A stretch of 63,264 nucleotides of DNA, the filler included, from Pelomyxa schiedti (lineage: Eukaryota > Protista > Evosea), in NCBI GenBank assembly GCA_020536535.1. It is 8 parts of 8 records of this genome, joined end to end, with 100 filler letters (N's around TTAATTAATTAA, not from the genome) between each part and the next. Parts side by side here need not be neighbours in the genome. Positions count along the whole stretch, not along the records: positions 34,388 to 51,785 come from JAHLWZ010001130.1; 7 more parts are not named here. The stretch is one strand, 5' to 3'. Shown here in pieces: positions 2,649 to 52,072 of the stretch. Every line of letters starts with the position of its first letter. Within the stretch, counting starts at the first letter, position 1. The position numbers and the translations under genes were made by a program. The notes under the pieces are model-generated. The model did not search any database. It had not been told where the DNA came from and worked only from the letters and a program-made list of their open reading frames with translations.

Positions 2649-2875
2649 CACTAACAATTTCTAAGATTCTCCCCCTCCACCTGAGAACAGCTAAAGTAGA
2701 AACTTTGTGCCGCTGTGCACCCACAATCCCCCAAAACACAACGAGTTCCAGTTCCACTAAAAAACCAAAATTCGATCATTCTCGTCGTTTGAGGAGACGC
2801 GGTGAGACGCGTTGCTTGTTTGATTGTATTTTTTAAAAGCTCTTTGGGGCCGATCGTCGGGTGCACCAAGTTGGG

Positions 2876-5800: not shown

Positions 5801-8800
5801 AATGTCAGTATTTTGTGCCATCTCCTCACTCTGTGCTCTGCAACCAAAGACTTGCTGTTAGCGTCCCATTTCCCTGCAAGGACACTCCCTCCAACCTCTC
5901 TCCAACTTGAAATACCCCCAATTACCAATACCCACAACTTCTACTCTGGTATTCAGCCCATGCAAATTGAGAATCCAGATGAGATGAAGTTGCATATCTT
6001 TTTTCTCCATGCAGAGTTGGCACTCAATGTTGCCCTGAGAAATAAGTTTGAATCAAATCTGGGGTCACAATCTGTCATCCAGGCTATCACAGTTTATTAT
6101 CTTCATTACTCTTTATGTATTTCATCGTTGTGAAGGACTTAATTGAATTAGATCCTCCTAGTGCAGCACTTTTTCTACAGCAGGCTCACTACTTGTTTGA
6201 GCAGGGAACTTTCAACGGTTATCTTGCAGGTACCTACAAGTCGATAGCTATTATAGACCTTTCTCAGCCTCATGGATCTACACTGTTTTGAAGACGATTC
6301 TGCCCTTGCCCAAGATTTTTGGAAATCTTTCGACTTCCATACAAAACTGTGCTGTTGCTCTTGACTTCTTGCAAGCAGAATGTTGTTTTGTTTTTATTGA
6401 AAATAAAACTTACTTATTTCAGTATCTGATTCGTTCTATCATTCTGCTGCTGATACCATTTTGCAACTCTACAAACTTAATCCTCTTGCCGCAACAAAAT
6501 ACCTCCGTAGCTGTTTACTTGTACACAGAAGTGGCAGAACAAGAATTTTGAAGTACATCTGACCTCAAACTGAGTTTGAACTGACTCTTCACCTAAAAAA
6601 AAAAGGATGGCTCTCTGCCACACATTGTTCGCCTCAGAAATTCTGGAAGTTATGGCATCTGAAATAAGCTATGATCTCTCCACCACCAACACCACAGATC
6701 CTATGCTCCTTCAACTTTCAAAACTTGCCCCTCACCTTCTCAAACTCAATATGTCCAATTGCACTTGCGTCACAGATGAAGGATTACCAGCCCTTTTAAC
6801 TGTATTTTGTGTTTTTTCTTTATGAGTTTCACACCGTTTAGCTCACTCAACTGGAATCTCTAAAATTGTGTGGATGCTATCAGTTGTCCTTGAAAGAATG
6901 TTGTTTTCCACCGTCACTAACAGAGCTTGATCTGTCTGGCTGCATGCCAATGTGCTAAATATCTCATTCATCCAATCGCCTGATCTGTTTTTCCAGTGCA
7001 GCTGACAAACTTTTGCGGCATATTGCCTACACTTGCACGAGATTAGAAACACTTTGCTTGAGCCAGACCAACCGGATTCTGCTTCCTACTATTCTCACCA
7101 TTTCGACTCTTCGCACTCTTTCTCTTCGGTGTTGTGGATTTATTTCTCCCTCTTCCATCTCTTTCTTGGAGTCTCCCCCACTCCTTTCACTCTCTCTTGC
7201 ACGCTGCCCAGAAATTGTTGATAGCCTTTCACTATCACTTCCCACCACGCTTCAGTCTATCGATTTTACTAGGCTCAAGCTGACAAGCACTGTGAAGAGA
7301 ATCTGCCAAAGTGATGCAAGCTCCACATTGACCTCCTTCAACCTCAGTGGGTGTACTCTGAATGACGAAACAGTACTACTGATTTCCCAAAGTTTGAAAT
7401 GCCTCAGGTTTTAGCATTTATGAGTGTAGGGTACCAATCAAAATCGCAGGCTACTTAACTTGAGCAAACAGACAAATATAACAACCACTTCTTTGGAGTC
7501 ACTCACTTCGCTGGAAAGCCTTTCATCTCTGGATGTCTCTTCAACTAGAGTAACAAATGATATACTAGAAAGCTATGGCAAGAGCTTCTCTCATCTGGAA
7601 TTTTTGAATGTGAATTCATGTCTCTTTTTAACCTGTATGACTTGTGCAACCACAAATCCGTCTCACTCTTTCTAAGACAGTGGTATCAAGGCGTTTCTAC
7701 AAGTATCCTCGGTAGAACTTCAATCACTCAATGTTGGTGGATGTGGTATTGAGAGACTCAACCCACTTCAAACCCACTCGAAGGTTCTTTTTTGTACACA
7801 CTGTGACTATTAACTTTAGCAGTTAACTGAACTTAATCTTGCACGCTCTTGTCTACTAGGAGCGGCTGTCGCAGAGATCGCAGTTTCTCTTCCCAACCTG
7901 GTTACCCTCAATTTTTCCCTCAACAAGGTTACAAGTATTGTCACTTAGAAAGCGTCAACTGACAATTGCAGTGGCACCACCTTCCTGTATATAGCTTTGC
8001 AGCCATTGGATTGCTCACGAACCTGCGTACTCTTAATCTCTCTACATGTCCGATAACAGATAACGTCTTTGGTCAACTGGCCTCCCGACTACTACTGCTG
8101 GAATCTCTTAATATATCATCTACAATTTTGACCAACAAGAGCATTTACAAGTAGGTAACTTTGCTTTATGTCGGGTTGGGACTAAGCATACTCTCCAGGA
8201 TAGCACGCTACCTAAGAAGTTTGAAGGAACTGGACCTGTCCCATAACCGATGCATGACAAGAGAAGCTTTGCCTTATCTCCATTACATCTCATCAGTATG
8301 GCAAAACACCACTCTCCAAAAAAAGTTTTTGCTTCTCATTCCTTACTAGTACGCAATCATAACAGCAGACCACATTGATCTCGGGTTACCAAAAAAAAAG
8401 TACGAAAATTTCACCAACCTAATTAATACCTTGTAGCAACGTGCGCGCAGCTCCTATTCCACTCAAAGCAGTCCGAACACATGAGCCCAAGTTTAACCCC
8501 TATTCAGTGCTGCAGAAGAAACTCATCACCAAGGACACTCTCAGAAAAATTGCTATTTTGGATCGAACTGGAACTACGGCCAACTCACAGTTGCAAAATG
8601 AGTTTTCAATTCCCTCACCACATTCGATCGTATCGGCGGATGATGCCAATTCGACTCCATCAATAGCAGGAATTGTTTTCCCTGAGGATGCCTCCTCAAC
8701 CCCACCAGCACTTCCCCCCCGTTTACCTCCACGTTTACCAGAGGCCACTGTCAATGCACCCAATTCAGAAACCAATTCGAATGAAACCCCCAGTGTGGAA

Positions 8801-9799
8801 CTCAATAATGAGGGCACTGATATGATACCTCTGGAAGAGGAACCAGATGAAATAGTTGATTCAGACCATGAAAATGACAACGACGAGGCAGGTGAAGGAG
8901 GCATGGATGATGGCTATGAAGATGCGGCCAGATCAATAGCAATGGCCATTGCCATGCAGAACGACGAAGCCGAAGTCACTGAAACTGTGGAAAAAGACTC
9001 GAGCGAGGGCCTATCAGTAGCCGTTGGAGAGAATGTCTCCCCAGCACGACTGGTACAGCGCCAGAAACAACTCAAGAAGCTGCAGCAGCAGCTGGAGCTT
9101 CAGTTGTCCCCTCTAGCCACACAAACAGGCACCAAATCGTCTCCAGCGCACTCGCCCGCCTCGATCCAGCCCAGCCCCGACCCTCCCGCGGTCATCGGCG
9201 ACCCCCAGGGGCTCCTCCCCAACCCTGGGGAGCCGGCCTCCCCCGCGTCCCCGGACCCCGACGTCCTGGTGCTGGGCATGCCCCCCGCCCCGCCGCCCCC
9301 GCTCACCACCCCGGAGCAGTACACCCACGCCCTCAAGCAGCCGCTCTCGGCGCCCCCCAAGTTCTACCAGCCCATGCCCGCTCTCTCGCCGCCGCCCCCG
9401 CTCCTGCCGCGGCCCCGCACCCCGCCGCCGGCCCCCCCGCCCCCGCCCGCACCGCCGCGGCTGGCACGCCAGGCGGCACTCCCGCCTGCCCCTGTGGCTG
9501 TGACTTTGCCTGTGCCGGTGCCTATGCCTTCCCCGCCACCATTTTCCTACACCATGCCCTCCCTTCCACCCCTCACTCAGCAGCAGCAGCTAAGGATTCC
9601 TCCTGCAATGCCGGTTGCCATTTCCCCCCGAAGTGGCTCTGAAACCCCACCAAAGTCACAATCCCCAGTTCCAACAGTTCCAGACACCAGCAGAGTAACC
9701 ACAACACCATCAGCATCAAGGCCGCCGGAAATGGTACAGCCCCCTGCAGTACCTATCTCGGTGCGGCCTACGTGTATAGCAAGACCGCGTCTACTGTAG
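2876..9799 (+). CDS. Clu-domain protein with C-terminal leucine-rich repeats and acidic/Pro-rich tail, multi-exon
   Basis: Spliced motifs PLMALIDFKGFRVLALS, YGSPDGG, DLEGH, DFSRTFPPE and LRPELVKSWPVPLSSDAFS are typical of amoebozoan Clu-domain proteins; Cys-containing LRRs at about 6700-8300; terminal exon in ORF 8441-9799. That all exons form one gene is inferred. Confidence 0.7.
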
Positions 9800-34287: not shown

Positions 34288-34491
34288 NNNNNNNNNNNNN
34301 NNNNNNNNNNNNNNNNNNNNNNNNNNNNNNNTTAATTAATTAANNNNNNNNNNNNNNNNNNNNNNNNNNNNNNNNNNNNNNNNNNNNGATGGCGTGCTTA
34401 CCCTGCGTCGTAATCACTCATCTCCCACGAGGCTTTTTTTTTTTTTTTTTTTTTTTGTGTTCCCCCAGGTTCTTTCCAGAGACACTTGGAG

Positions 34492-37400
34492 ATGTCTCTG
34501 AGTGAAAAAGGAAGAGGCACTTCCATTTTCATACCTTGGTTCTGTTGTCTTGCCAGTCCGAGATCCATCAAGGTGTTTGAACTGTTTGAAATGCGATTAA
34601 GCCGAAATCTGTGAACGCAAAAAACTCAAAGCAAACGGGTGCACAACAAACACGCGAGGGGAAGGTCGACCGGGGCCGGCGAGGCGGATCCCCGGTCCCG
34701 TCGGCGCCCGTGCGCATCGTGCTCCAATCCAACGGCGCCACGTCGTTCCCGGCCGAGTCGGACGTCGAGCCCCGGCGCAACCGCGTCCTCAGCATTTCCG
34801 TGTACGGCAACCTCATCAGCAGCATCCCGCCCTACATTTCGACTTTGCCGGCTCTGACCGAGCTCGACGTGAGCCACAACCGGATGGAGCATTTCCCCTC
34901 CGAGACGGTGGCTTCCCTCGCGGCGACCCTGAGGCACCTGGTGATCTCGGGCAACTCCATACGAGATCTCCCCCGCGAGACTCTTGCCTCACTTGGCAAC
35001 CTGATGACGCTTAAAGCCGCCCTGAACCCGCTTGGGGACAGTGGATTCCCTGCTCATGCATTTGGCCTCCCTTCCATAATTACCCTGGACCTTGCGCGGG
35101 CGGGCCTGAGGGGCGAATGTGGCGTGATTGACTTGCACCGCCCTGTTGCGAATCCGACTGTCAGTCCTCAGACCCCAGAGTCGACTGGCACTGCTGCGAA
35201 ATCCAGTGAAGTGGGCGAAAAGGCGGTTGCGTTACCTACCAGCCAACCTGGCTCCCCTAAAACATCCAGAAGTGGAACTTGTCATATAAATTATCTCATT
35301 CTGGACCATAATAAGCTGAGGGCCCTCCCACCCAATATCGGCAAGATCCATGAACTCCGCACACTGAATGCTTCCTTCAATCGCCTGACTTCAATTCCTG
35401 ATAGTTTATGTTCACTATGTAAATTAGACACACTGATTTTGTCAGATAATCGTCTCACATCTCGTAAGCCTGTTTCTTTGAGAATAATCTTTAAGCTTGC
35501 TCATCTTCTTAACAAGTTCCTGATGAACTGCCGCATCTACCTTTCCTTGCAACACTTGATATTTCCAACAACCCAATATCCGCTTTCCCTTCAAGCTGGT
35601 TTGTCACTCGCAATGGGGAATTCCGCAAAAACACATGGGTTTCCCTTCTTGAATTAGGTGCACATGACATGTTGCTTGAGCACCTACCAGATGATTTTTT
35701 TGCTCATTTTCCCTGTATTTCAATATGCAACCTATCCCGAAACAATCTTGGAAATCTTCCAGATCTTACGCCCGCCACAACGTTGGCTTGTCTGTATATT
35801 GTGCGTCCAAACCTCAGAAACTTTTTTCCTTGAAATTAACCACCAATTCCAGAGTAACAACCAGTTGACTACGTTACCAGAGTCTTTGTCTTCTATGGTG
35901 AGGCTTGAGCAACTTGACATTTCCTGCAACTGTATAGCACATTGTCCATCACTAACAGGTTGATTACAGTTCTTTTAACCGTTCCGGAACTAAAAACAAG
36001 TAATAGCGCTGGCACGGCTCAGTAATTTCACGGCTGGATACAATCCATTTTTGGAGACACCTGAATTACCTCCAAGTCTAATAGAACTGAATCTTTCTGG
36101 ATGTGTATTAAGAGAGCAACCTGTTGGAACTTTTTCCTCACTGAAGAAACTGTATTTATGTATGTCCAAGACGTTTACCCAATTTCAATCGGTTTTTATT
36201 TTGTATGATTTAGGTTTTTGTATTACTTTCACATGTAACGAATTAACTCTATTCCAGCCTTGAATGAATTTACAAGCATATCCGAGAATTTAGTATGCTC
36301 CCCACAGCTGGGAACTTTAGATGTGGCCCTCAATAAACTTGAGGTTCTCCCTGAAACGTGTGCAGGTCCTCTTCCATTGTTAGTACTCAATCATAACCCA
36401 AATTAGATTACATAATTGCTAATCGGAATAGTGATGCCATTCAAAAAACTCTTCCTGTTCACAACTCTGTGTCACCTTGTGTAAACATGTGTGTTGGCAT
36501 TGCTGATACACTGGGCCGCAGACTATCCATGGTAATGTGCGATTTCATCCACCACCAATTTATTTTTTAAGGAAGATGTTATCTGCTTTGAGGGTCAAAT
36601 TACCTCTGGGGCCGACTTCATTGGCCTCTTTGATGGACACGGAGGTAAAGAAGTGGCAGATTTTGTTTCAGCAACACTACCAGGTACGTTCTATCGAAAA
36701 TTGCAACTTCAACCATCTTAAAAAAACTAGGCTATTTCATAGGTGTTTTGCGAGACAATGAAGAAGAAGTCTGCAAAACTGCTTATCAACAAACTCAGGT
36801 GAAATGTAGGGAATATCTAGGGGAAGATGCAGAGCAGAAGGTAGTTATCCAAGTATACATTTAATGCACATTCTTATGTTAGTTTAATCCTCCAAGTTAT
36901 ATCTTTAACTTCCTTGGGGTTAACAACAGCAAGTTGGAACAACTGCACTCGTTGCACTTGTATGGGGGGATCACATTTTCATGTCTAACGCAGGTGATTC
37001 TCGAGCAATTCTGTGGCGTAAAGATCATGCTATACGACTCTCCAGGGATCATAAACCAACTGACGCTGATGAATATAAACGAATAAGAGATCTAGGGGGT
37101 AAACAGAGCATTACCACAACATAGTTTCTCAAGATTCTCCAAGGTTTTGTAACCGAGATTGGCCGAATCAACGGAATTATTGCCGTCTCTAGGTCTTTTG
37201 GTGACTTCTTTGTGCAACCTCTTCTGAATCCAGAGCCTTACATCAGCAACACCAAATTAACTGATGACGATAGATTTTTACTTCTTGCGTGTGACGGGGT
37301 CTGGGATGTCCTAACTGATGACAAGGCAGGGGAAATTGTCAATCTTGCACTTGACGCATATGGAGATGACCCCGAGGCAGCTGCTTATGTTCTACGTGAT

Positions 37401-38081
37401 GCCGCGTACCTCAATGGCAGCACAGATAATATCAGTGTAGCCGTGTGCCTTTTAAAGACGGGTGGTACAGCAAAAGAGCTAGCGGACAAGCCAAAAACTC
37501 ACAGACACAAGCATTCCAAACGCAATCCACCGCGGGACCCCCAGTGCCAAGCAGGGCTACTAGCGGCCCTACGGCATGCACAATCAGCCTCAAAACTAAA
37601 GCCGCAGGCACCCAAGTCCTCCACCAAAAAGCACTCCGCCGCGTCCAGTGCCTCCACAACAACAACAACAACAGCAGCAGCAACAACACATCACAGCGTA
37701 ACCGAGCACACAAGCAGCCCAAAGAAGGACCACACAGTGCGCTCCAGGCGGCACTCCAGGGCCTGTGTTGAAACCACCGGAACAGCCCATTCTCGGTCGA
37801 TAAGCACGATGCCTTCAAGCCTCACATCGACCGTACCGCCGGTGGAGTCAGAGGCCCCGCCCCCACAGACGCAGGCACCAACGCCAACATCGCTAAGGTC
37901 GAGCGACCACGCGCACTCAACCAAAAGGTCTTCCCGCAGCACGTTGGGAACGCCGCCAACTACAACACCACCACCACCACCACCCAGCGCAGACACATCA
38001 CCCCCGCCGTCAGTAAAGTCACCCACCCACAAACCACATAAAGACAGCCGAGGAGAGGACAAGTCTCTCTCCTCCATGTGA
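34492..38081 (+). CDS. LRR + PP2C protein phosphatase (PHLPP-like architecture)
   Basis: Many LxxLxLxxNxL repeats; PP2C motifs GRRLSMED, GLFDGHGG, GTTA, NAGDSRA, DHKP, AVSRSFGD, LACDGVWDV and DNIS. Start approximate. Confidence 0.88.
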
Positions 38082-38227
38082 TAAACAGTTGCCCCTTCTA
38101 CAACACCCTACGTTGTAGTAAGTGGCAAGCTGAGGGAGACTAAAAAAAACTGTTAAAAATTTCCCTTGGCCCTTGTTTTTCCTTCGTCGTCGACAAGCAA
38201 TCGTCGCACTGTCAATCTCTAGAGAGA

Positions 38228-39427
38228 ATGAGCACATCAACTCAAACAGCTACCCGAGTGGCGTTTGTTTCGCAGGGGCCGGTGCTGTTCACGTGCCCAC
38301 ACGGTCACGCAGTGTACAGGCACACGGACCAGCACACAGGCAAAGGGCGGCGCGAGCTTCATCGCAGGGAGGCATTCACTTCCCTGTTGGCTGCAACAAT
38401 GGCATCTAGAACAAATGGCAGCCTCATTGCATGGCGTGGTGAGAGGCTTTTGTTCCATTTCATCTTGGTTTTTTTTTTAAATTGTATTTATTTATTATCT
38501 TACATGAAGTTAACATAGTGAAGGAACTGCAAGTAGTGAGAGTAGGGATGGTGGACGTGATGGAGGGACATTGGGTGGGGAGAATGTTCCAATGGTTTAT
38601 GCCACCTCTTCTTTGTGTCATGGGCAGAGCCGGGGCTCTGCTGTGGTGTCTGAGCTTGACCTTGATGCTAACTTCTTGAGGCCGTGTCAGTACACAATGT
38701 CACCATGGCACTTGGCGCTCCTTGAATTCCGCAGAACGTGGGTACAGCTTGGTGTGCCAATGCTGCATGTTGATATTCATGGGAAGGTATCTTGCTGGTT
38801 TGATGTCTTTCATGTAATCCCTCTCTTAGTGCGCCACAGGTAGACAGACGCTCTGACCTCGATATTGATATCGGCATCAAGCCTATTCAAGTTCTGTGGC
38901 AAAATAATTCTGGACCGCACAACAGTGACTTCTGCAGGAGGATGAAGATGTCACTGTACCGAGGTCTAACTGGTGCTGTCAAAGGAATAAAAGGAAAGAG
39001 CCAAGCCCCAACAGCAGCGGCTGATCCATTATTGAGTTGGGGTGTGGAAATGGAGCCGGCACTAGATGGATATTGGGGAACTGGTGACTCCATGCCGACC
39101 ACAATTATTCACCAATCCGCAACCCTTGGCATTCCATCAGTAATGCTCGAATTCCCTTACAGTGTGCGAAAGGCCCTGTGCAGCCCAGACCACTCTCATG
39201 CACTAGAAGGCATCTGTCAATCCATAATGGAAACATACAAGGAAGTAGTTGTGCCAGCTGGAGTCACATCACAAGCTCAAGCATCCAGTACCATGGCACG
39301 ACCTGAGGTGAACAACTTGCTGACAAGTGATGCTCTCCATCTCCTTGACATCATCACAGGCACACCTTCTCACAACATACCACTCTCTGAGTTCCAGGAA
39401 CCAGAGTTGCCAGATGATTCTCTCTGA
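38228..39427 (+). CDS. Putative N-formylglutamate amidohydrolase-like metallohydrolase
   Basis: VLFTCPHG, DANF, PWH, LHVDIHGK, DIDIG and SVMLEF motifs over three exons. Confidence 0.5.
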
Positions 39428-39566
39428 TGCAACACCTATTCTATCATGGCTTATTTATCCATTTACTCAACGTGTGCTGCCACATTGGTTTTGTGAGTGA
39501 ATTGGCATTTGCATATGAATGTGAACCGTCGAACAATTTGAGGTGTCAGGGATCTCACACTCGAAA

Positions 39567-41452
39567 ATGATGGGATTACCCCTTCGGGTAACAGATCACT
39601 TCAAATTGTTTTTCCAACGAAAGGGTAGATGGAGGACGCACCGGATCCGGGAACTAATGCCTGGGTTGTTTGGGCATCTAAGATCTTGTGGAGTGTGGCA
39701 CTGGCACCACACACGTGCCTCATTCCCTGGAGCTCACTGGACGAAGACTTGTTACAAACCAAAGAAGATGAGAAGAACCTTGATACACTCTTACAGATAG
39801 CAGAAGCCTTTTTTCCGTGCTGTAACTTTTTTTTCCCCATACAGCTCTTTTATTAAGAGTTTTTTTTTTTTGAAAAACCTAGTTACATGTGTAACAGTTG
39901 TACTAACTTCTGTAGATTGGTTGCCTTGGCCGCAAAAAAATTAATAGCAGTTGCTGATGGGAGTGCAGAACTAGCGTTAGGTTTTTGTGCTACCTCTGGT
40001 AGCCGACGGGTGACAGAGTGGCTTCTTACCCATTTCCCGGAAGATACGACGTCAATTGTAAAACATTCACGCGGTTTCATGATTATGCACTTCTCATGCA
40101 TGAATGGTTGGATGGACAACGTCAAGTGGGCTGCATCCAAGTTCCCAGTCTCATGTGATGAATTGGCTGATACCTTCGTTTATTCCTGCCAGGAAGGACA
40201 GCTGGAGGTGTGCAAGTTTCTTGTGGAAAAATATGGGTTTACAGCAGATCATGTCCTCCGGGGCAACCGCCCGCCTGTAGAGACGATCCTTATGTATGGT
40301 CACTTGGATATGTTTCAGTGGCTAGTATCTACTTATGGGCTGACACGAGACAACTCTGAAATCAGCAAACATTTTGGATCTCTTCTCAGGCAGGTTCTTG
40401 GGCACGGGAACCCTGAATTTGCTGAGTGGTTCTTCACCCAGTTTGCAGTTGATCAAACTGACATTTTGGAGAACAAGATGGAGATTAATTACCGCCTTAT
40501 GGCTGCTGGAAGTGTCGAAATGGTCAAGTGGTTTACAGCCAAGTTTGAGTTTACCTGGATACCGCATCAGTATGTCATGGAAATTGCCGAGACAAGTCAT
40601 CTCGATTTTGTGGAGTGGCTCTGTGATACTTTTCCGAGTACCAGCAAGTATATCTTGAACCCAGCATGCAAGCAAGGGCATATTGATTCCGTCAAGTTTA
40701 TATGTGAAAAAATCTCTTTGGATGCATCAACTGTTTGGCCTTCCTTACTGGTCAGCCTGAAAGAAGGTTTCTTGGGAATTGCCAAATATCTGGAGACAAA
40801 ATATGGTCCCTTTGACCCAACGTACCCAGGACTACCAGATACCCTTCAATGTATTTGCAGCTCGGGAAATATTGACACACTCAAGTGGGTAACCACAAAG
40901 TATCCCCTAGTCATGCGGGTAGAACCAAGTGTGCTCTTGCCCCACGTTGCTAAACCAGCCCAAAAGAATCCAATTCCTTTCCTTCAGTGGCTTTTTGAGG
41001 ACCGCAATCTCGCTGTATCTAGCCTTCATTATGCTCAAAACGAAGTATTTCGCACATTTTGTGTGCAAGGGTACCTGGATGTACTGAAATGGTTCCTTGC
41101 CAAGGGCTACATTACTGCATGTGATTTACAACTCACTGCTGACGATTCTGAGAACGGCCCATGCACACCTCTAGAAATATACACCATCAACGGAAACATG
41201 GCAGTTGTCAAGTGGATATCTGTCAACTATCCCGAAATTGCCCAATCGCAAGCTGTGGCGTGCATCCGCCGAGCCTGCGCCGCCGACCACACATCCATAG
41301 CTAGGTTTTTACTGAGCCGGTACTCTCCTACTGTCCAGGAATTATGCCGGCACCCACCTTGCATAATGGAGCTGACTGAACACCCATTCATACTTCAACT
41401 ACTCAGGCGCCTCGTTGTTGCCCACACCCACGACTGGTGGGACTTAACTTAA
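39567..41452 (+). CDS. Ankyrin-repeat protein
   Basis: Repeated (S/A)C..G.l.(vv)KWL units in ORF 39887-41452; 5' exon uncertain. Confidence 0.75.
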
Positions 41453-41758
41453 ATTCTTGTTTGTAAATGGGGGAAAAAAACGGTGCACAACATAGTTAGC
41501 AACTTTCACAAGAGACCAGACCGTCGTTATTACGAAAAGTAATAACTTTGACCTGCATTTCACTGAAAAAGGAGAAAGCGAAAATTTTCGGGTGGTTTTG
41601 GTTTGAAACGATGTTCAGATTTTTTATGTTCGGCCTCCATGTCCCACGGTAAATAGTGACTTGTTCGTAAGTTACTTTATAAACGTTTATTATATAGTAC
41701 ATAGTAAATAAACACAACAAAAAACCTAAAAGACAAACAACAGACAAAACAAACAAAC

Positions 41759-42457
41759 ATGCAAGCTATTAAATGCGTTGTTGTTGGCGACGGAGCAGTT
41801 GGCAAGACTTGCTTGCTGATCAGTTACACGTCTGACGCGTTCCCAACCGACTACATCCCGACCGTTTTCGACAACTACAGCACGAACGTGATGGTTGACG
41901 GTCGGCCCATCAACTTGGGATTGTGGGACACTGCCGGGCAGGAGGATTATGATCGCCTTGTATGTGGAGAATTAGCTCTTTCACAACATACGTGCAACTA
42001 ATAAAATGCGCGCATCGCTTATTTAATATTTCCTCGACTGTAGCACAGCTGCTAATAAATCACACAGAGACCACTTTCATACCCTTGCACTGATGTGTTC
42101 ATCGTTGCATTCTCAGTGATCAGCCCGCCCTCATACGAGAACGTTGGCAGCAAATGGTTCCCTGAGATATCGCACCACTGCCCCAGGACACCGATCGTGC
42201 TTGTGGGAACCAAGACAGACCTCAGGGATGATAGGGAAGCCAGGGAAAGGGCCCACATCAAAGCCACACCCATCACGTATGAACAAGGAGTGGCAAGAGC
42301 AAAGGAAATTAATGCAACGAAGTATCTGGAGTGCTCTGCATTGACACAGAAGGGGCTCAAGGAGGTGTTTGATACGGCCATCAGGTGTGTGATCACGCCA
42401 CCAGTCAACGTCAAGAAGAACATCAAGAAACACAAGGGGGGTTGCAACCTCCTCTAA
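41759..42457 (+). CDS. rac: Rac-family small GTPase
   Basis: [45 protein letters not shown]|RPLSYP (GTATGT..CAG intron), ECSALTQ and CAAX box CNLL. Confidence 0.96.
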
Positions 42458-42654
42458 CATCACTGTGGCCACACAAACAACCCTTTTCAATTTTGTGTAA
42501 GAATTAACACTATTGTGTATTACAAAGTCCCACAATTCACACTCAGCCAACAAATATTCAGTTCAAGTACTAATTCTTGGCCTGGAAATTTCGCCGGTGC
42601 ATACAAAAAATAGAAATTAGCTACGGTGCTGCTTGTGCCTTTCACCCCTCAAAT

Positions 42655-42737
42655 CAATCGCGGGTTCGATTCCCGCCGTCCCCATACCCCACAGGGGGCG
42701 TCGCATAGTGGTTATTGCGTAAAGCTAGTAACTTTAC
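42655..42737 (+). tRNA. Circularly permuted tRNA-Thr(AGU)
   Basis: T arm GCGGG-TTCGATT-CCCGC (42660-42676), 3' acceptor CGTCCCC plus discriminator A (42677-42684), linker TACCCCACA, 5' acceptor GGGGGCG (42694-42700), D arm GCATAGTGGTTATTGC, anticodon arm TAAAG-CTAGTAA-CTTTA with AGT at 42727-42729. Confidence 0.85.
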
Positions 42738-42874
42738 TTCGAATTTGGTGCTCTGTTGTCTGGGTATCCAGGTGGCGGGGTGCCGCGAGGGGCAGGGCAC
42801 AACAATATTCTTCGAAACTTACACATTCTGATATAACATTGATGCACTGCAGTGCGACCACCGGCGTATTCCAA

Positions 42875-42881
42875 TTTTTTT
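42875..42881 (+). terminator. Putative RNA polymerase III terminator (T7)
   Basis: First long T run downstream of the tRNA, immediately after the closing stem. Confidence 0.5.
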
Positions 42882-43435
42882 CCATCCTCCTGTGGGGTCC
42901 CACCCAACCCAGTGACCAATCACAGTCGAGGTCACCCCAACCTGGAACTGGTTGACTCAGGCCTCTGATCTCCCATCACACACACAATAGCACTGACGTC
43001 GCCATCACTACAAGCACGAATCACACACAACACAGACGATAACGAGAATTAAGAGAACCAAGATAACTGATCCTTACCCTTTGGAGCTCCTCAGAATAAC
43101 CTACTCAGCTCCGAGAAGTACTGGATGTGGTTGGTCACTGGGTTGGGTGTGATTCGTGCTTGTAGTGATGGCGACGTCAGTGCTATTGTGTGTGTGATGG
43201 GAGATCAGAGGCCTGAGTCAACCAGTTCCAGGTTGGGGTGACCTCGACTGTGATTGGTCACTGGGTTGGGTGGGACCCCACAGGAGGATGGAAAAAAATT
43301 GGAATACGCCGGTGGTCGCACTGCAGTGCATCAATGTTATATCAGAATGTGTAAGTTTCGAAGAATATTGTTGTGCCCTGCCCCTCGCGGCACCCCGCCA
43401 CCTGGATACCCAGACAACAGAGCACCAAATTCGAA

Positions 43436-43518
43436 GTAAAGTTACTAGCTTTACGCAATAACCACTATGCGACGCCCCCTGTGGGGTATGGGGACGGCGG
43501 GAATCGAACCCGCGATTG
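43436..43518 (-). tRNA. Mirror copy of the permuted tRNA-Thr(AGU)
   Basis: Reverse complement of 42655-42737 in the palindrome arm. Confidence 0.8.
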
Positions 43519-43715
43519 ATTTGAGGGGTGAAAGGCACAAGCAGCACCGTAGCTAATTTCTATTTTTTGTATGCACCGGCGAAATTTCCAGGCCAAGAAT
43601 TAGTACTTGAACTGAATATTTGTTGGCTGAGTGTGAATTGTGGGACTTTGTAATACACAATAGTGTTAATTCTTACACAAAATTGAAAAGGGTTGTTTGT
43701 GTGGCCACAGTGATG

Positions 43716-44414
43716 TTAGAGGAGGTTGCAACCCCCCTTGTGTTTCTTGATGTTCTTCTTGACGTTGACTGGTGGCGTGATCACACACCTGATGGCCGTA
43801 TCAAACACCTCCTTGAGCCCCTTCTGTGTCAATGCAGAGCACTCCAGATACTTCGTTGCATTAATTTCCTTTGCTCTTGCCACTCCTTGTTCATACGTGA
43901 TGGGTGTGGCTTTGATGTGGGCCCTTTCCCTGGCTTCCCTATCATCCCTGAGGTCTGTCTTGGTTCCCACAAGCACGATCGGTGTCCTGGGGCAGTGGTG
44001 CGATATCTCAGGGAACCATTTGCTGCCAACGTTCTCGTATGAGGGCGGGCTGATCACTGAGAATGCAACGATGAACACATCAGTGCAAGGGTATGAAAGT
44101 GGTCTCTGTGTGATTTATTAGCAGCTGTGCTACAGTCGAGGAAATATTAAATAAGCGATGCGCGCATTTTATTAGTTGCACGTATGTTGTGAAAGAGCTA
44201 ATTCTCCACATACAAGGCGATCATAATCCTCCTGCCCGGCAGTGTCCCACAATCCCAAGTTGATGGGCCGACCGTCAACCATCACGTTCGTGCTGTAGTT
44301 GTCGAAAACGGTCGGGATGTAGTCGGTTGGGAACGCGTCAGACGTGTAACTGATCAGCAAGCAAGTCTTGCCAACTGCTCCGTCGCCAACAACAACGCAT
44401 TTAATAGCTTGCAT
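43716..44414 (-). CDS. rac: Rac GTPase (mirror copy)
   Basis: Reverse complement of 41759-42457. Confidence 0.9.
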
Positions 44415-44720
44415 GTTTGTTTGTTTTGTCTGTTGTTTGTCTTTTAGGTTTTTTGTTGTGTTTATTTACTATGTACTATATAATAAACGTTTATAAAGTA
44501 ACTTACGAACAAGTCACTATTTACCGTGGGACATGGAGGCCGAACATAAAAAATCTGAACATCGTTTCAAACCAAAACCACCCGAAAATTTTCGCTTTCT
44601 CCTTTTTCAGTGAAATGCAGGTCAAAGTTATTACTTTTCGTAATAACGACGGTCTGGTCTCTTGTGAAAGTTGCTAACTATGTTGTGCACCGTTTTTTTC
44701 CCCCATTTACAAACAAGAAT

Positions 44721-46606
44721 TTAAGTTAAGTCCCACCAGTCGTGGGTGTGGGCAACAACGAGGCGCCTGAGTAGTTGAAGTATGAATGGGTGTTCAGTCA
44801 GCTCCATTATGCAAGGTGGGTGCCGGCATAATTCCTGGACAGTAGGAGAGTACCGGCTCAGTAAAAACCTAGCTATGGATGTGTGGTCGGCGGCGCAGGC
44901 TCGGCGGATGCACGCCACAGCTTGCGATTGGGCAATTTCGGGATAGTTGACAGATATCCACTTGACAACTGCCATGTTTCCGTTGATGGTGTATATTTCT
45001 AGAGGTGTGCATGGGCCGTTCTCAGAATCGTCAGCAGTGAGTTGTAAATCACATGCAGTAATGTAGCCCTTGGCAAGGAACCATTTCAGTACATCCAGGT
45101 ACCCTTGCACACAAAATGTGCGAAATACTTCGTTTTGAGCATAATGAAGGCTAGATACAGCGAGATTGCGGTCCTCAAAAAGCCACTGAAGGAAAGGAAT
45201 TGGATTCTTTTGGGCTGGTTTAGCAACGTGGGGCAAGAGCACACTTGGTTCTACCCGCATGACTAGGGGATACTTTGTGGTTACCCACTTGAGTGTGTCA
45301 ATATTTCCCGAGCTGCAAATACATTGAAGGGTATCTGGTAGTCCTGGGTACGTTGGGTCAAAGGGACCATATTTTGTCTCCAGATATTTGGCAATTCCCA
45401 AGAAACCTTCTTTCAGGCTGACCAGTAAGGAAGGCCAAACAGTTGATGCATCCAAAGAGATTTTTTCACATATAAACTTGACGGAATCAATATGCCCTTG
45501 CTTGCATGCTGGGTTCAAGATATACTTGCTGGTACTCGGAAAAGTATCACAGAGCCACTCCACAAAATCGAGATGACTTGTCTCGGCAATTTCCATGACA
45601 TACTGATGCGGTATCCAGGTAAACTCAAACTTGGCTGTAAACCACTTGACCATTTCGACACTTCCAGCAGCCATAAGGCGGTAATTAATCTCCATCTTGT
45701 TCTCCAAAATGTCAGTTTGATCAACTGCAAACTGGGTGAAGAACCACTCAGCAAATTCAGGGTTCCCGTGCCCAAGAACCTGCCTGAGAAGAGATCCAAA
45801 ATGTTTGCTGATTTCAGAGTTGTCTCGTGTCAGCCCATAAGTAGATACTAGCCACTGAAACATATCCAAGTGACCATACATAAGGATCGTCTCTACAGGC
45901 GGGCGGTTGCCCCGGAGGACATGATCTGCTGTAAACCCATATTTTTCCACAAGAAACTTGCACACCTCCAGCTGTCCTTCCTGGCAGGAATAAACGAAGG
46001 TATCAGCCAATTCATCACATGAGACTGGGAACTTGGATGCAGCCCACTTGACGTTGTCCATCCAACCATTCATGCATGAGAAGTGCATAATCATGAAACC
46101 GCGTGAATGTTTTACAATTGACGTCGTATCTTCCGGGAAATGGGTAAGAAGCCACTCTGTCACCCGTCGGCTACCAGAGGTAGCACAAAAACCTAACGCT
46201 AGTTCTGCACTCCCATCAGCAACTGCTATTAATTTTTTTGCGGCCAAGGCAACCAATCTACAGAAGTTAGTACAACTGTTACACATGTAACTAGGTTTTT
46301 CAAAAAAAAAAAACTCTTAATAAAAGAGCTGTATGGGGAAAAAAAAGTTACAGCACGGAAAAAAGGCTTCTGCTATCTGTAAGAGTGTATCAAGGTTCTT
46401 CTCATCTTCTTTGGTTTGTAACAAGTCTTCGTCCAGTGAGCTCCAGGGAATGAGGCACGTGTGTGGTGCCAGTGCCACACTCCACAAGATCTTAGATGCC
46501 CAAACAACCCAGGCATTAGTTCCCGGATCCGGTGCGTCCTCCATCTACCCTTTCGTTGGAAAAACAATTTGAAGTGATCTGTTACCCGAAGGGGTAATCC
46601 CATCAT
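44721..46606 (-). CDS. Ankyrin-repeat protein (mirror copy)
   Basis: Reverse complement of 39567-41452. Confidence 0.7.
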
Positions 46607-46745
46607 TTTCGAGTGTGAGATCCCTGACACCTCAAATTGTTCGACGGTTCACATTCATATGCAAATGCCAATTCACTCACAAAACCAATGTGGCAGCACA
46701 CGTTGAGTAAATGGATAAATAAGCCATGATAGAATAGGTGTTGCA

Positions 46746-47945
46746 TCAGAGAGAATCATCTGGCAACTCTGGTTCCTGGAACTCAGAGAGTGGTATGTTG
46801 TGAGAAGGTGTGCCTGTGATGATGTCAAGGAGATGGAGAGCATCACTTGTCAGCAAGTTGTTCACCTCAGGTCGTGCCATGGTACTGGATGCTTGAGCTT
46901 GTGATGTGACTCCAGCTGGCACAACTACTTCCTTGTATGTTTCCATTATGGATTGACAGATGCCTTCTAGTGCATGAGAGTGGTCTGGGCTGCACAGGGC
47001 CTTTCGCACACTGTAAGGGAATTCGAGCATTACTGATGGAATGCCAAGGGTTGCGGATTGGTGAATAATTGTGGTCGGCATGGAGTCACCAGTTCCCCAA
47101 TATCCATCTAGTGCCGGCTCCATTTCCACACCCCAACTCAATAATGGATCAGCCGCTGCTGTTGGGGCTTGGCTCTTTCCTTTTATTCCTTTGACAGCAC
47201 CAGTTAGACCTCGGTACAGTGACATCTTCATCCTCCTGCAGAAGTCACTGTTGTGCGGTCCAGAATTATTTTGCCACAGAACTTGAATAGGCTTGATGCC
47301 GATATCAATATCGAGGTCAGAGCGTCTGTCTACCTGTGGCGCACTAAGAGAGGGATTACATGAAAGACATCAAACCAGCAAGATACCTTCCCATGAATAT
47401 CAACATGCAGCATTGGCACACCAAGCTGTACCCACGTTCTGCGGAATTCAAGGAGCGCCAAGTGCCATGGTGACATTGTGTACTGACACGGCCTCAAGAA
47501 GTTAGCATCAAGGTCAAGCTCAGACACCACAGCAGAGCCCCGGCTCTGCCCATGACACAAAGAAGAGGTGGCATAAACCATTGGAACATTCTCCCCACCC
47601 AATGTCCCTCCATCACGTCCACCATCCCTACTCTCACTACTTGCAGTTCCTTCACTATGTTAACTTCATGTAAGATAATAAATAAATACAATTTAAAAAA
47701 AAAACCAAGATGAAATGGAACAAAAGCCTCTCACCACGCCATGCAATGAGGCTGCCATTTGTTCTAGATGCCATTGTTGCAGCCAACAGGGAAGTGAATG
47801 CCTCCCTGCGATGAAGCTCGCGCCGCCCTTTGCCTGTGTGCTGGTCCGTGTGCCTGTACACTGCGTGACCGTGTGGGCACGTGAACAGCACCGGCCCCTG
47901 CGAAACAAACGCCACTCGGGTAGCTGTTTGAGTTGATGTGCTCAT
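46746..47945 (-). CDS. Hydrolase-like protein (mirror copy)
   Basis: Reverse complement of 38228-39427. Confidence 0.5.
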
Positions 47946-48091
47946 TCTCTCTAGAGATTGACAGTGCGACGATTGCTTGTCGACGACGAAGGAAAAACAA
48001 GGGCCAAGGGAAATTTTTAACAGTTTTTTTTAGTCTCCCTCAGCTTGCCACTTACTACAACGTAGGGTGTTGTAGAAGGGGCAACTGTTTA

Positions 48092-51000
48092 TCACATGGA
48101 GGAGAGAGACTTGTCCTCTCCTCGGCTGTCTTTATGTGGTTTGTGGGTGGGTGACTTTACTGACGGCGGGGGTGATGTGTCTGCGCTGGGTGGTGGTGGT
48201 GGTGGTGTTGTAGTTGGCGGCGTTCCCAACGTGCTGCGGGAAGACCTTTTGGTTGAGTGCGCGTGGTCGCTCGACCTTAGCGATGTTGGCGTTGGTGCCT
48301 GCGTCTGTGGGGGCGGGGCCTCTGACTCCACCGGCGGTACGGTCGATGTGAGGCTTGAAGGCATCGTGCTTATCGACCGAGAATGGGCTGTTCCGGTGGT
48401 TTCAACACAGGCCCTGGAGTGCCGCCTGGAGCGCACTGTGTGGTCCTTCTTTGGGCTGCTTGTGTGCTCGGTTACGCTGTGATGTGTTGTTGCTGCTGCT
48501 GTTGTTGTTGTTGTTGTGGAGGCACTGGACGCGGCGGAGTGCTTTTTGGTGGAGGACTTGGGTGCCTGCGGCTTTAGTTTTGAGGCTGATTGTGCATGCC
48601 GTAGGGCCGCTAGTAGCCCTGCTTGGCACTGGGGGTCCCGCGGTGGATTGCGTTTGGAATGCTTGTGTCTGTGAGTTTTTGGCTTGTCCGCTAGCTCTTT
48701 TGCTGTACCACCCGTCTTTAAAAGGCACACGGCTACACTGATATTATCTGTGCTGCCATTGAGGTACGCGGCATCACGTAGAACATAAGCAGCTGCCTCG
48801 GGGTCATCTCCATATGCGTCAAGTGCAAGATTGACAATTTCCCCTGCCTTGTCATCAGTTAGGACATCCCAGACCCCGTCACACGCAAGAAGTAAAAATC
48901 TATCGTCATCAGTTAATTTGGTGTTGCTGATGTAAGGCTCTGGATTCAGAAGAGGTTGCACAAAGAAGTCACCAAAAGACCTAGAGACGGCAATAATTCC
49001 GTTGATTCGGCCAATCTCGGTTACAAAACCTTGGAGAATCTTGAGAAACTATGTTGTGGTAATGCTCTGTTTACCCCCTAGATCTCTTATTCGTTTATAT
49101 TCATCAGCGTCAGTTGGTTTATGATCCCTGGAGAGTCGTATAGCATGATCTTTACGCCACAGAATTGCTCGAGAATCACCTGCGTTAGACATGAAAATGT
49201 GATCCCCCCATACAAGTGCAACGAGTGCAGTTGTTCCAACTTGCTGTTGTTAACCCCAAGGAAGTTAAAGATATAACTTGGAGGATTAAACTAACATAAG
49301 AATGTGCATTAAATGTATACTTGGATAACTACCTTCTGCTCTGCATCTTCCCCTAGATATTCCCTACATTTCACCTGAGTTTGTTGATAAGCAGTTTTGC
49401 AGACTTCTTCTTCATTGTCTCGCAAAACACCTATGAAATAGCCTAGTTTTTTTAAGATGGTTGAAGTTGCAATTTTCGATAGAACGTACCTGGTAGTGTT
49501 GCTGAAACAAAATCTGCCACTTCTTTACCTCCGTGTCCATCAAAGAGGCCAATGAAGTCGGCCCCAGAGGTAATTTGACCCTCAAAGCAGATAACATCTT
49601 CCTTAAAAAATAAATTGGTGGTGGATGAAATCGCACATTACCATGGATAGTCTGCGGCCCAGTGTATCAGCAATGCCAACACACATGTTTACACAAGGTG
49701 ACACAGAGTTGTGAACAGGAAGAGTTTTTTGAATGGCATCACTATTCCGATTAGCAATTATGTAATCTAATTTGGGTTATGATTGAGTACTAACAATGGA
49801 AGAGGACCTGCACACGTTTCAGGGAGAACCTCAAGTTTATTGAGGGCCACATCTAAAGTTCCCAGCTGTGGGGAGCATACTAAATTCTCGGATATGCTTG
49901 TAAATTCATTCAAGGCTGGAATAGAGTTAATTCGTTACATGTGAAAGTAATACAAAAACCTAAATCATACAAAATAAAAACCGATTGAAATTGGGTAAAC
50001 GTCTTGGACATACATAAATACAGTTTCTTCAGTGAGGAAAAAGTTCCAACAGGTTGCTCTCTTAATACACATCCAGAAAGATTCAGTTCTATTAGACTTG
50101 GAGGTAATTCAGGTGTCTCCAAAAATGGATTGTATCCAGCCGTGAAATTACTGAGCCGTGCCAGCGCTATTACTTGTTTTTAGTTCCGGAACGGTTAAAA
50201 GAACTGTAATCAACCTGTTAGTGATGGACAATGTGCTATACAGTTGCAGGAAATGTCAAGTTGCTCAAGCCTCACCATAGAAGACAAAGACTCTGGTAAC
50301 GTAGTCAACTGGTTGTTACTCTGGAATTGGTGGTTAATTTCAAGGAAAAAAGTTTCTGAGGTTTGGACGCACAATATACAGACAAGCCAACGTTGTGGCG
50401 GGCGTAAGATCTGGAAGATTTCCAAGATTGTTTCGGGATAGGTTGCATATTGAAATACAGGGAAAATGAGCAAAAAAATCATCTGGTAGGTGCTCAAGCA
50501 ACATGTCATGTGCACCTAATTCAAGAAGGGAAACCCATGTGTTTTTGCGGAATTCCCCATTGCGAGTGACAAACCAGCTTGAAGGGAAAGCGGATATTGG
50601 GTTGTTGGAAATATCAAGTGTTGCAAGGAAAGGTAGATGCGGCAGTTCATCAGGAACTTGTTAAGAAGATGAGCAAGCTTAAAGATTATTCTCAAAGAAA
50701 CAGGCTTACGAGATGTGAGACGATTATCTGACAAAATCAGTGTGTCTAATTTACATAGTGAACATAAACTATCAGGAATTGAAGTCAGGCGATTGAAGGA
50801 AGCATTCAGTGTGCGGAGTTCATGGATCTTGCCGATATTGGGTGGGAGGGCCCTCAGCTTATTATGGTCCAGAATGAGATAATTTATATGACAAGTTCCA
50901 CTTCTGGATGTTTTAGGGGAGCCAGGTTGGCTGGTAGGTAACGCAACCGCCTTTTCGCCCACTTCACTGGATTTCGCAGCAGTGCCAGTCGACTCTGGGG

Positions 51001-51681
51001 TCTGAGGACTGACAGTCGGATTCGCAACAGGGCGGTGCAAGTCAATCACGCCACATTCGCCCCTCAGGCCCGCCCGCGCAAGGTCCAGGGTAATTATGGA
51101 AGGGAGGCCAAATGCATGAGCAGGGAATCCACTGTCCCCAAGCGGGTTCAGGGCGGCTTTAAGCGTCATCAGGTTGCCAAGTGAGGCAAGAGTCTCGCGG
51201 GGGAGATCTCGTATGGAGTTGCCCGAGATCACCAGGTGCCTCAGGGTCGCCGCGAGGGAAGCCACCGTCTCGGAGGGGAAATGCTCCATCCGGTTGTGGC
51301 TCACGTCGAGCTCGGTCAGAGCCGGCAAAGTCGAAATGTAGGGCGGGATGCTGCTGATGAGGTTGCCGTACACGGAAATGCTGAGGACGCGGTTGCGCCG
51401 GGGCTCGACGTCCGACTCGGCCGGGAACGACGTGGCGCCGTTGGATTGGAGCACGATGCGCACGGGCGCCGACGGGACCGGGGATCCGCCTCGCCGGCCC
51501 CGGTCGACCTTCCCCTCGCGTGTTTGTTGTGCACCCGTTTGCTTTGAGTTTTTTGCGTTCACAGATTTCGGCTTAATCGCATTTCAAACAGTTCAAACAC
51601 CTTGATGGATCTCGGACTGGCAAGACAACAGAACCAAGGTATGAAAATGGAAGTGCCTCTTCCTTTTTCACTCAGAGACAT
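48092..51681 (-). CDS. LRR-PP2C phosphatase (mirror copy)
   Basis: Reverse complement of 34492-38081. Confidence 0.85.
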
Positions 51682-52072
51682 CTCCAAGTGTCTCTGGAAA
51701 GAACCTGGGGGAACACAAAAAAAAAAAAAAAAAAAAAAAGCCTCGTGGGAGATGAGTGATTACGACGCAGGGTAAGCACGCCATCNNNNNNNNNNNNNNN
51801 NNNNNNNNNNNNNNNNNNNNNNNNNNNNNTTAATTAATTAANNNNNNNNNNNNNNNNNNNNNNNNNNNNNNNNNNNNNNNNNNNNACCTCACTGATGCTT
51901 GGTGTGTGCGCCTTTTCCTGTTGACAAATTCATTCACTCCCCTTTGACTTCAGGATCTTTTTTCCTCGTGAGTGAGTTACGAGAATTGTACCAAAAGATG
52001 TTACCCACCATATGCTTTTGCACCCCTTCTTCTTTGGGCGCTTTCTGAGAAACATCAAAAACAAAAGCTTGT

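Follow-up and report, generated by a model that had tools for sequence, protein, structure and literature searches.

The locus considered here occupies 42583-42881 on the + strand and harbors, in order, the 3′ half of a tRNA, a short linker, and the 5′ half of the same tRNA, enclosed by a leader and a trailer that pair with each other. It is best read as a complete tRNA-Thr(AGU) of Pelomyxa schiedti in circularly permuted order, i.e., as a genuine permuted gene. Positions are those of the window, the whole 63,264-nt stretch of DNA that was analyzed (filler included). The features of the locus, with the helices and the hairpin as predicted by RNAfold, are as follows.

42552-42558, + strand: TATA-like AAATATT, about 25-30 nt upstream of 42583, read from the sequence
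42583-42659, + strand: leader, 77 nt, with the 5′ strands of helices A-D and a small hairpin at 42618-31
42583-87 / 42869-73, + strand: helix A, 5 bp
42592-99 / 42859-66, + strand: helix B, 8 bp
42633-41 / 42794-802, + strand: helix C, 9 bp
42645-50 / 42787-92, + strand: helix D, 6 bp
42660-42684, + strand: tRNA 3′ half, comprising the T-stem and loop (GCGGG-TTCGATT-CCCGC), the acceptor 3′ strand CGTCCCC, and the discriminator A73
42685-42693, + strand: linker between the halves, TACCCCACA, 9 nt, closing the acceptor stem
42694-42736, + strand: tRNA 5′ half, positions 1-43, comprising the acceptor strand GGGGGCG, U8, the D-arm, and the anticodon arm
42694-42868, + strand: abundant RNA, about 175 nt, composed of the tRNA 5′ half and the trailer, from RNA contigs of two runs
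42737-42745, + strand: single-stranded joint, CTTCGAATT, leading from the anticodon stem to the hairpin, read from the sequence
42746-63 / 42768-85, + strand: hairpin of 18 bp with 8 G-U pairs and a GUAU loop
42786-42873, + strand: outer trailer, with the 3′ strands of helices D, C, B, and A
42875-42881, + strand: T7 run, a Pol III-type terminator and the sole T run of at least 4 in 42560-42890
43292-43590, - strand: mirror copy of the whole locus on the opposite arm of the palindromic contig

The source contig, JAHLWZ010001130.1 of assembly GCA_020536535.1 (17,398 bp), lies entirely within the window. P. schiedti is an anaerobic, heterotrophic archamoeba (Amoebozoa) and is culturable; its genome assembly derives from single cells whose DNA was amplified by MDA (PMC8887013). 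The two arms of the contig, 34388-43035 and 43138-51785, form a 99.98% palindrome and differ solely at 43027 and 43032; the center of the palindrome is covered by no read contig. Because the assembly stems from MDA of single cells and the palindrome center has no read contig, the mirror copy is probably an assembly or amplification duplicate rather than a second gene. A Rho/Rac-type GTPase gene is located 126 nt upstream of the tRNA locus. The contig also encodes a 521-aa ankyrin protein whose closest relative, Pelo_3065 of P. schiedti (62% identity), sits on a different contig of the same assembly.

The two halves supply everything that a canonical cloverleaf calls for. The acceptor stem is fully paired (7/7, including one G-U), and by eye the invariant bases are all in place, i.e., U8, A14, G15/C48, G18G19, A21, G26, U33, and A37, as well as T54-T55-C56, A58, and the G53-C61 pair of the T-arm. 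The 5′ half thus carries A14, G15, G18, G19, and A21 in its D-arm, followed by G26 at 42719, while its anticodon arm presents U33, A37, and the anticodon AGT (42727-29) in a 7-nt loop. CCA is absent from the encoded sequence. A perfect B box (10/10 consensus, 42663-73) lies within the T-arm, and an A box with 8/9 consensus positions (42701-11) lies within the 5′ half. Cleavage behind A73 and ahead of G1 would release the linker TACCCCACA.

In the native order, ARAGORN finds 0 tRNAs and no tmRNA, and Rfam, one of the checks named in the first-pass annotation, gives 0 matches at the gathering score, RF00005 included. A canonical nuclear tRNA gene is rejected on these grounds, as neither program detects a contiguous cloverleaf. 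Once the 3′ half is made to follow the 5′ half, tRNA-Thr(agt) is called by ARAGORN for nearly every variable-region junction tried, in some cases as a 73-nt tRNA with a 5-nt variable loop. These calls confirm the tRNA but, as almost any junction is tolerated, cannot place the junction. The gene order is permuted and a canonical cloverleaf forms on rejoining, and in these two respects the locus agrees with the circularly permuted tRNA gene family.

The open ends of the permuted tRNA are located in the variable loop. The first 0-2 bases of the joint CTTCGAATT probably belong to this loop, and its 3′ part is probably supplied by the end of the leader at about 42655-59 (CAATC). Several registers tried by hand yield no canonical bulge-helix-bulge (BHB; hBHBh′) at the junction, with only the leader-strand half fitting. 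The half-BHB that can be drawn is weak and consists of helix D, AAAT 42651-54 paired with ATTT 42743-46, the bulge CAA 42655-57, and TC 42658-59 paired with GA 42741-42; on the other strand, the position of the bulge is taken up by the 40-nt hairpin. It rests on a 4-bp A-U helix that is too weak to appear in the minimum free energy (MFE) structure. By the usual rule, a cut at this half-BHB would let the 3′ exon begin with ATC and the T-stem, which would be a normal variable-loop end.

Helices A-D are nested and together provide 28 bp of pairing between leader and trailer; the outer trailer additionally forms two small internal stem-loops (42803-41 and 42844-55). The nested pairing of the flanks proposed in the first-pass annotation is present in full and is reproduced by RNAfold both in the free MFE structure (-106.9 kcal/mol), which contains the nested helices and the hairpin, and with the cloverleaf forced (-104.0 kcal/mol), which keeps the same helices. 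The comparison with shuffled sequences that it had called for gives a z-score of -3.98 for the whole region on the + strand, with 0/200 shuffles folding as well, and -2.17 on the - strand. The energy gained by pairing the leader with the outer trailer is -30.6 kcal/mol versus -6.8 ± 2.8 kcal/mol for shuffled leaders (z -8.5, 0/200). The hairpin, described as having 16 bp and 8 G-U pairs, turns out to extend to 18 bp, 8 of them G-U, so that the earlier figure was conservative. Its claimed strand specificity also holds, with -22.9 kcal/mol on the + strand versus -8.9 kcal/mol on the - strand (z -5.1). Mononucleotide shuffles were used for both the leader-trailer and the hairpin statistics.

These two elements differ in what they say about the strand. 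The minus strand yields an equally good leader-trailer gain, as the reverse complement pairs equally well, and these helices alone therefore do not name the strand. The hairpin is stable on the + strand only and does name it. Folded by itself, the 175-nt RNA (42694-42868) is no better than its shuffles (z -1.4), and its helix B strand, CACCGGCG, is left unpaired. A 3′ end trimmed just outside helix B thus implies pairing with the leader. Local alignments of the leader with the tRNA 5′ half and of the trailer with the 3′ half score below the shuffle mean, and decayed tRNA halves from a recent tandem duplication are rejected as the origin of leader and trailer for this reason.

AAATATT at 42552-58 is a candidate upstream Pol III-type promoter element, read as such by analogy with the TATA-like elements of the permuted tRNA genes of Cyanidioschyzon merolae (PMC3978253). 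It is a better promoter candidate than the A-box-like TAGCTACGG at 42618, from which a restored A-box/B-box promoter order had been proposed. That motif has 6/9 of the specified consensus positions, a level reached at 1.5% of the contig-arm positions, such that ~1 occurrence is expected by chance in the 77-nt leader; the proposed order falls with it. On the trailer side, the weak B-box-like TTCGAA at 42736 and 42809 is likewise at chance level, and both TAGCTACGG and TTCGAA are rejected as promoter boxes. The T7 run behind the scaffold is where it had been placed, and it reads T6 in one independent DNA contig. AAATATT upstream and T7 downstream would suit a single transcription unit; the RNA contigs, however, cover 42694-42868 only, to the exclusion of the leader and the 3′ half.

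Read evidence comes from two DNA and two RNA runs (the RNA runs being X3 and X4), all from one laboratory's study. The analysis used contigs rather than raw reads, and the RNA ends given here are deduced from where contigs end. The assembly may itself have been built from the DNA runs, which serve as a consistency check, not as independent support; the RNA runs are from a different sample (S2). A 1160-nt DNA contig runs unbroken through 42095-42891, the permuted order included, at a depth of 20.1 that equals the depth of the Rho exon. The permuted order is thus present in the reads and is single-copy. Within this one contig the depth is flat at 20.1 across 42165-42864, and a repeat with a depth of 180-870 starts at 42892. 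Among the read contigs, no other DNA contig matches either tRNA half, and no joined or contiguous version occurs as DNA. A SINE or MITE, which requires many copies, is rejected on the basis of the single-copy DNA depth.

Transcription of the 5′ half and trailer from the + strand is intense. The RNA depth over 42690-42868 is 890-9620 in X3 and 185-948 in X4, i.e., 100-1000 times that of the neighboring mRNA (the Rho exon, 8.3 in X3 and 3.3 in X4). The highest depth is found over the hairpin (42746-85), and the profile across 42690-42868, with both flanks equal and the middle higher, is that expected of one short tagmented cDNA. In X3 and X4 alike, RNA contigs have exactly 42694 as their first position (records 18, 19, and 26), which corresponds to G1 and to the RNase P site. 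Record 27 spans 42720-42778, from the anticodon arm into the hairpin, while the templated part of record 31 stops at 42868, 2 nt beyond helix B, and is followed on the + strand by a non-templated A22, which fixes the strand of the RNA and its native 3′-OH end. Over 42550-42689, which comprises leader and 3′ half and extends into the linker, the depth is 0 in X3 and X4. Transcription of the flanks, on which the first-pass annotation depended, is accordingly borne out for the trailer, at a very high level, and finds no counterpart for the leader, to which no RNA contig maps. In a single contig, G26 (42719) is deleted in about 20% of the X3 RNA depth and in 0 of the DNA, which would fit the reverse-transcription signature of an m2,2G26-type (dimethyl-G26) modification.

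X3 and X4 date from 2023, are from a single cell, carry Nextera adaptors, and show A-tails on non-mRNA. They fit the libraries of PMC10579272, which were made by a modified Smart-seq2 protocol in which RNA is polyadenylated in vitro to catch bacterial transcripts. If X3 and X4 are these libraries, as their features indicate, the A-tail results from polyadenylation in vitro and marks a native 3′-OH, and a natural poly(A) tail is rejected. No joints of a ligated or circular tRNA occur in the contigs of the two RNA and two DNA runs. This is weak evidence, since contigs can document what is present but not what is absent, and since mature tRNAs with their modifications are copied poorly and under-sampled by this type of library.

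Permuted tRNA genes are reportedly the subject of Soma 2007, Maruyama 2010, and Chan 2011. A 2014 review lists 34 of them, from C. merolae, Ostreococcus and Micromonas, the nucleomorph of Bigelowiella natans, and Thermofilum pendens, with junctions at 15/16, 20/21, 37/38, 50/51, and 59/60 (PMC3978253). The algal genes have an upstream TATA-like element, a signal-free linker of 1-74 nt, and a downstream T-stretch; their junction is cut and ligated first to form a circle, which is later opened by RNase P and RNase Z (PMC3978253). A 2026 review still names algae as the sole eukaryotes with permuted tRNA genes (PMC13578239). A full-text literature search returned no report of permuted tRNA in amoebozoans among the matches listed, and such genes are unreported in the genome papers of P. 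schiedti (PMC8887013) and Mastigamoeba.

The P. schiedti locus resembles the known permuted genes in having the 3′ half upstream of the 5′ half on one strand, a 9-nt linker (known range 1-74), leader-trailer pairing at the junction, a TATA-like element upstream, a T-stretch downstream, and an unencoded CCA. C. merolae likewise has a permuted Thr(AGT) gene. There are, however, several differences. The host is a heterotrophic amoebozoan, whereas the eukaryotes so far on record with such genes are all algae; the junction falls within the variable loop and has no canonical BHB; and a leader of 77 nt and a trailer of about 137 nt build 28 bp of nested pairing as well as the 18-bp hairpin. Moreover, the P. 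schiedti RNA shows the linker cut before the trailer has come off, opposite to the order that leads through a circular intermediate.

Other RNAs share single aspects of this architecture. In the split tRNAs of Nanoarchaeum equitans and Caldivirga maquilingensis, the pieces come from separate loci and a clear BHB is present. As in these archaeal systems, whose genes are mentioned in PMC3978253 and PMC4033280, long complementary flanks outside the tRNA body hold two pieces together before cleavage and ligation; in contrast, the P. schiedti pieces would belong to one transcript and separate only after the linker is cut. Two-piece tmRNA (RF04321 / RF01850) has the same order of T-arm, acceptor 3′ strand, loop, and acceptor 5′ strand, and excision of its loop leaves two base-paired RNAs that stay together. 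It is bacterial or organellar, lacks an anticodon arm, and contains a tag reading frame, unlike the P. schiedti locus. YrlA (RF02553) similarly has ends closed by a long stem and a tRNA mimic of T-arm, acceptor, and D-arm at the far end, yet it is bacterial and without an anticodon arm. Rfam in E-value mode retrieves tmRNA, YrlA, and mascRNA, all below threshold and all driven by the T-arm/acceptor module. The tmRNA scores are 22.4 bits versus a gathering score of 47 and 19.8 versus 84, with the 22.4-bit match covering the tRNA-like module only. Membership in tmRNA is rejected, given these sub-gathering scores, the failure of ARAGORN to find a tmRNA, and the full anticodon arm; membership in YrlA is rejected at 19.7 bits versus a gathering score of 69.

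In class II tRNAs and in engineered V-loop aptamer tRNAs, extra RNA also emerges from the variable region. Such an E. coli tRNA with an aptamer of roughly 100 nt is stable, chargeable, and active on the ribosome (PMC5397188). These molecules are single covalent chains with a closed arm, whereas the arm of the P. schiedti locus is open-ended and about 215 nt in size; tRNA-Thr is, moreover, a class I tRNA. The search for homologues that the first-pass annotation had recommended gave none in JGI metagenome contigs: exact-pattern scans with a 30-mer from the 5′ half and with a pattern of T-loop, acceptor, gap, and acceptor both returned 0. A 21.8-kb sample of another contig (L003) contains no tRNA and no B box.

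That 42583-42881 is some kind of functional permuted or split tRNA gene is considered likely. The route by which its RNA would mature is proposed to run from end-processing first to ligation last. A precursor of about 290 nt, starting near 42583 and stopping at T7, would adopt the normal cloverleaf fold, with the acceptor stem closed by the 9-nt linker and the variable loop open and extended by the four nested helices and the hairpin. RNase P would cut before G1 and, presumably, RNase Z after A73, so that removal of the linker is the first step. The 28-bp scaffold would then hold the two pieces together, much like the complementary flanks of archaeal split tRNAs. Finally, the scaffold would be cut off at the variable loop and the halves ligated to an ordinary 73-nt tRNA, to which CCA is added. 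We infer the transcription start, the polymerase, the enzymes, and the cut after A73, along with the continued association of the pieces and the final cleavage and ligation. The pathway as a whole is put forward tentatively, at slightly below an even chance, and an end in a ligated normal tRNA after end-processing is given a roughly even chance, or slightly less.

The start of the abundant RNA at G1 is what cleavage of the linker by RNase P would produce. Removal of the linker first would explain the size of the scaffold, as only its 28 bp and the acceptor stem would then join the halves. The proposed order resembles that of intron-containing tRNAs in yeast, whose ends are processed first and which are spliced later. 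Against the proposed route count the leader, 3′ half, and linker, none of which has an RNA contig, the missing joined form (a weak argument), the lack of a canonical BHB, the lack of homologues in the metagenome scans, and the mature 5′ end with the trailer still on, which is not an intermediate of the circularize-first algal pathway. To our knowledge, no eukaryotic splicing endonuclease cuts in the variable loop. Of the possibilities raised in the first-pass annotation, one has a scaffold bring the ends into position to be cleaved and ligated, and the other has a larger RNA turn into a chargeable two-piece form upon cutting of the linker. Common to both are a permuted tRNA and a scaffold, which are real, and the RNA starts at G1, yet neither alternative is singled out.

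The second of these alternatives, a natural two-piece tRNA, holds that after the linker is cut the pieces stay unligated, are charged, and are used in translation. They would comprise the leader, 3′ half, and CCA (about 105 nt) and the 5′ half and trailer (about 175 nt), and the scaffold would remain as a giant open-ended variable arm, as in two-piece tmRNA but with a real anticodon. The dominant RNA detected is indeed one of the two pieces expected and has defined ends, at G1 and 2 nt beyond helix B, and the 175-nt piece needs the leader for the pairing of its 3′ end. No joined form and no canonical BHB is seen, the best resemblance in Rfam, below threshold, is to permuted tmRNA, and the earlier known permuted junctions are all elsewhere than in the variable loop, which is the only E. 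coli tRNA site that accepts an aptamer of roughly 100 nt (PMC5397188). The scaffold, however, is about twice that insert at about 215 nt, the partner piece of leader and 3′ half goes undetected, and detection is biased against mature, modified tRNAs. Nor is abundance proof of a final product, since in yeast end-matured, unspliced pre-tRNAs are abundant normal intermediates. We know of no natural two-piece tRNA, hence the low prior, and this outcome is regarded as unlikely, if a serious contender. That the 175-nt RNA is itself functional as a stand-alone tRNA-derived non-coding RNA, with no working tRNA made, is judged quite improbable. The T-arm/acceptor module would then act as an RNase P guide for the 5′ end, or the RNA would be transcribed from its own internal A box. 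It is the sole RNA seen, at a very high level, and it contains a good A box at 42701 as well as the weak TTCGAA motifs. Modules for tRNA-like processing are known, mascRNA being an example, and the sub-threshold match to YrlA is in line with this. However, a processing signal needs none of the invariant bases, the U33/A37 7-nt loop, or the 7/7 acceptor stem that the locus has kept, and the leader-trailer complementarity (z -8.5) is unexplained if the leader stands outside the system. In addition, the fold of the free RNA does not stand out from its shuffles, chance suffices to account for the B-box-like motifs, and a single-copy locus is not a SINE.

The classical algal-type pathway, in which a circle forms first and RNase P and RNase Z then open it, would make the 175-nt RNA an off-pathway by-product. 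A mature 5′ end with the trailer attached should not arise if circularization comes first, and neither a back-joined contig nor a canonical BHB is seen; it is thus very unlikely that this pathway alone operates, even though no other route for permuted tRNAs has experimental support (PMC3978253) and the gene layout is identical. An artefact or dead remnant, i.e., an MDA or assembly chimera or two decayed tandem tRNA copies, is given next to no weight. MDA amplification of single cells (PMC8887013) and a palindromic contig whose center has no read support invite suspicion of this kind. One read contig, however, spans the entire locus at even single-copy depth, cDNA from the separate sample S2 covers the 5′ half and trailer, and the flanks have no similarity to the tRNA halves. 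Nor would chimerism or decay produce nested helices, an acceptor loop of exactly 9 nt, and a terminator.

Until now, permuted tRNA genes have counted as a curiosity of a handful of tiny algae and a single archaeon, and they are used in arguments on algal and endosymbiont ancestry (PMC13578239). Its occurrence, with transcription, in an anaerobic amoebozoan that lives heterotrophically would show that this gene order is not limited in origin to photosynthetic lineages. The P. schiedti gene escapes standard tRNA finders, as the empty results of both ARAGORN and Rfam illustrate. What is novel in P. schiedti is the lineage, the position of the junction, and the unusually large scaffold. A variable-loop junction, the lack of a BHB, and an RNA that is cut at G1 with its trailer attached point to a maturation route not previously described for permuted tRNAs. 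This route would consist either of maturing the ends first and then joining the scaffold-held pieces, or of a permanently two-piece tRNA. If the latter reading is true, the tRNA-Thr(AGU) of P. schiedti would be charged and would decode as a complex of the two pieces instead of as a ligated 76-mer. With either outcome, the range of RNAs accepted by the tRNA processing machinery, and possibly by the ribosome, would prove broader than is known at present.

Aligned against itself, the 17,398-bp contig at 34388-51785 (JAHLWZ010001130.1), which carries the permuted tRNA-Thr(AGU) gene, is an inverted repeat of 99.98% identity, with two mismatches (43027 and 43032) and no gaps. Its parts, and two genes upstream of the tRNA locus, are as follows:

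34388-43035, first arm of the palindrome
43036-43137, centre of the palindrome
43138-51785, second arm (mirror), carrying a duplicate of each first-arm gene
within 34611-38081 and the mirror, large gene for an LRR + PP2C phosphatase (called at 827-894 aa)
within 34611-38081 and the mirror, ankyrin-repeat gene (521 aa)

The ankyrin-repeat gene has a paralogue, Pelo_3065 (contig JAHLWZ010000238.1), to which it is 62% identical.

Because the source is MDA-amplified single cells, the palindrome looks like a fold-back chimera; therefore, the assembly counts each gene of this contig twice. The stretch 43075-43140, at the palindrome centre, is not covered by any read contig. Immediately past the tRNA terminator, the DNA depth rises from 20 to 180-870 (42892-43057), and read contigs part ways at either edge of this interval, which is a dispersed, high-copy, CACACA-rich repeat with a weak presence in RNA. 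The palindrome has this repeat as its hinge, and the mis-join is probably due to it.

In the 3′ UTR of the Rho/Rac-type GTPase gene, which itself lies 126 nt upstream of the tRNA locus, both RNA runs carry an additional CAACC at 42477 that is absent from the DNA runs and the assembly, representing allelic or culture variation within a short CAACC repeat. Contigs of the Rho mRNA stop at about 42525, upstream of the tRNA leader.

Within the tRNA, G26 (42719) is deleted in one RNA contig, at about 20% of the depth of X3 (one of the two single-cell RNA runs), and in none of the DNA contigs. A modified G26 may have left this deletion as its footprint in reverse transcription. Across 42694-42746, RNA contigs also harbor one to two unplaced mismatches, a candidate source of which is inosine at position 34 (42727).

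The T-arm/acceptor/loop/acceptor(/D-arm) module at 42655-42719 aligns, below threshold, to the Rfam permuted-tmRNA and YrlA models. Thus, covariance models of permuted tRNA-like modules could serve as a crude means of detecting permuted tRNA genes missed by tRNA finders.
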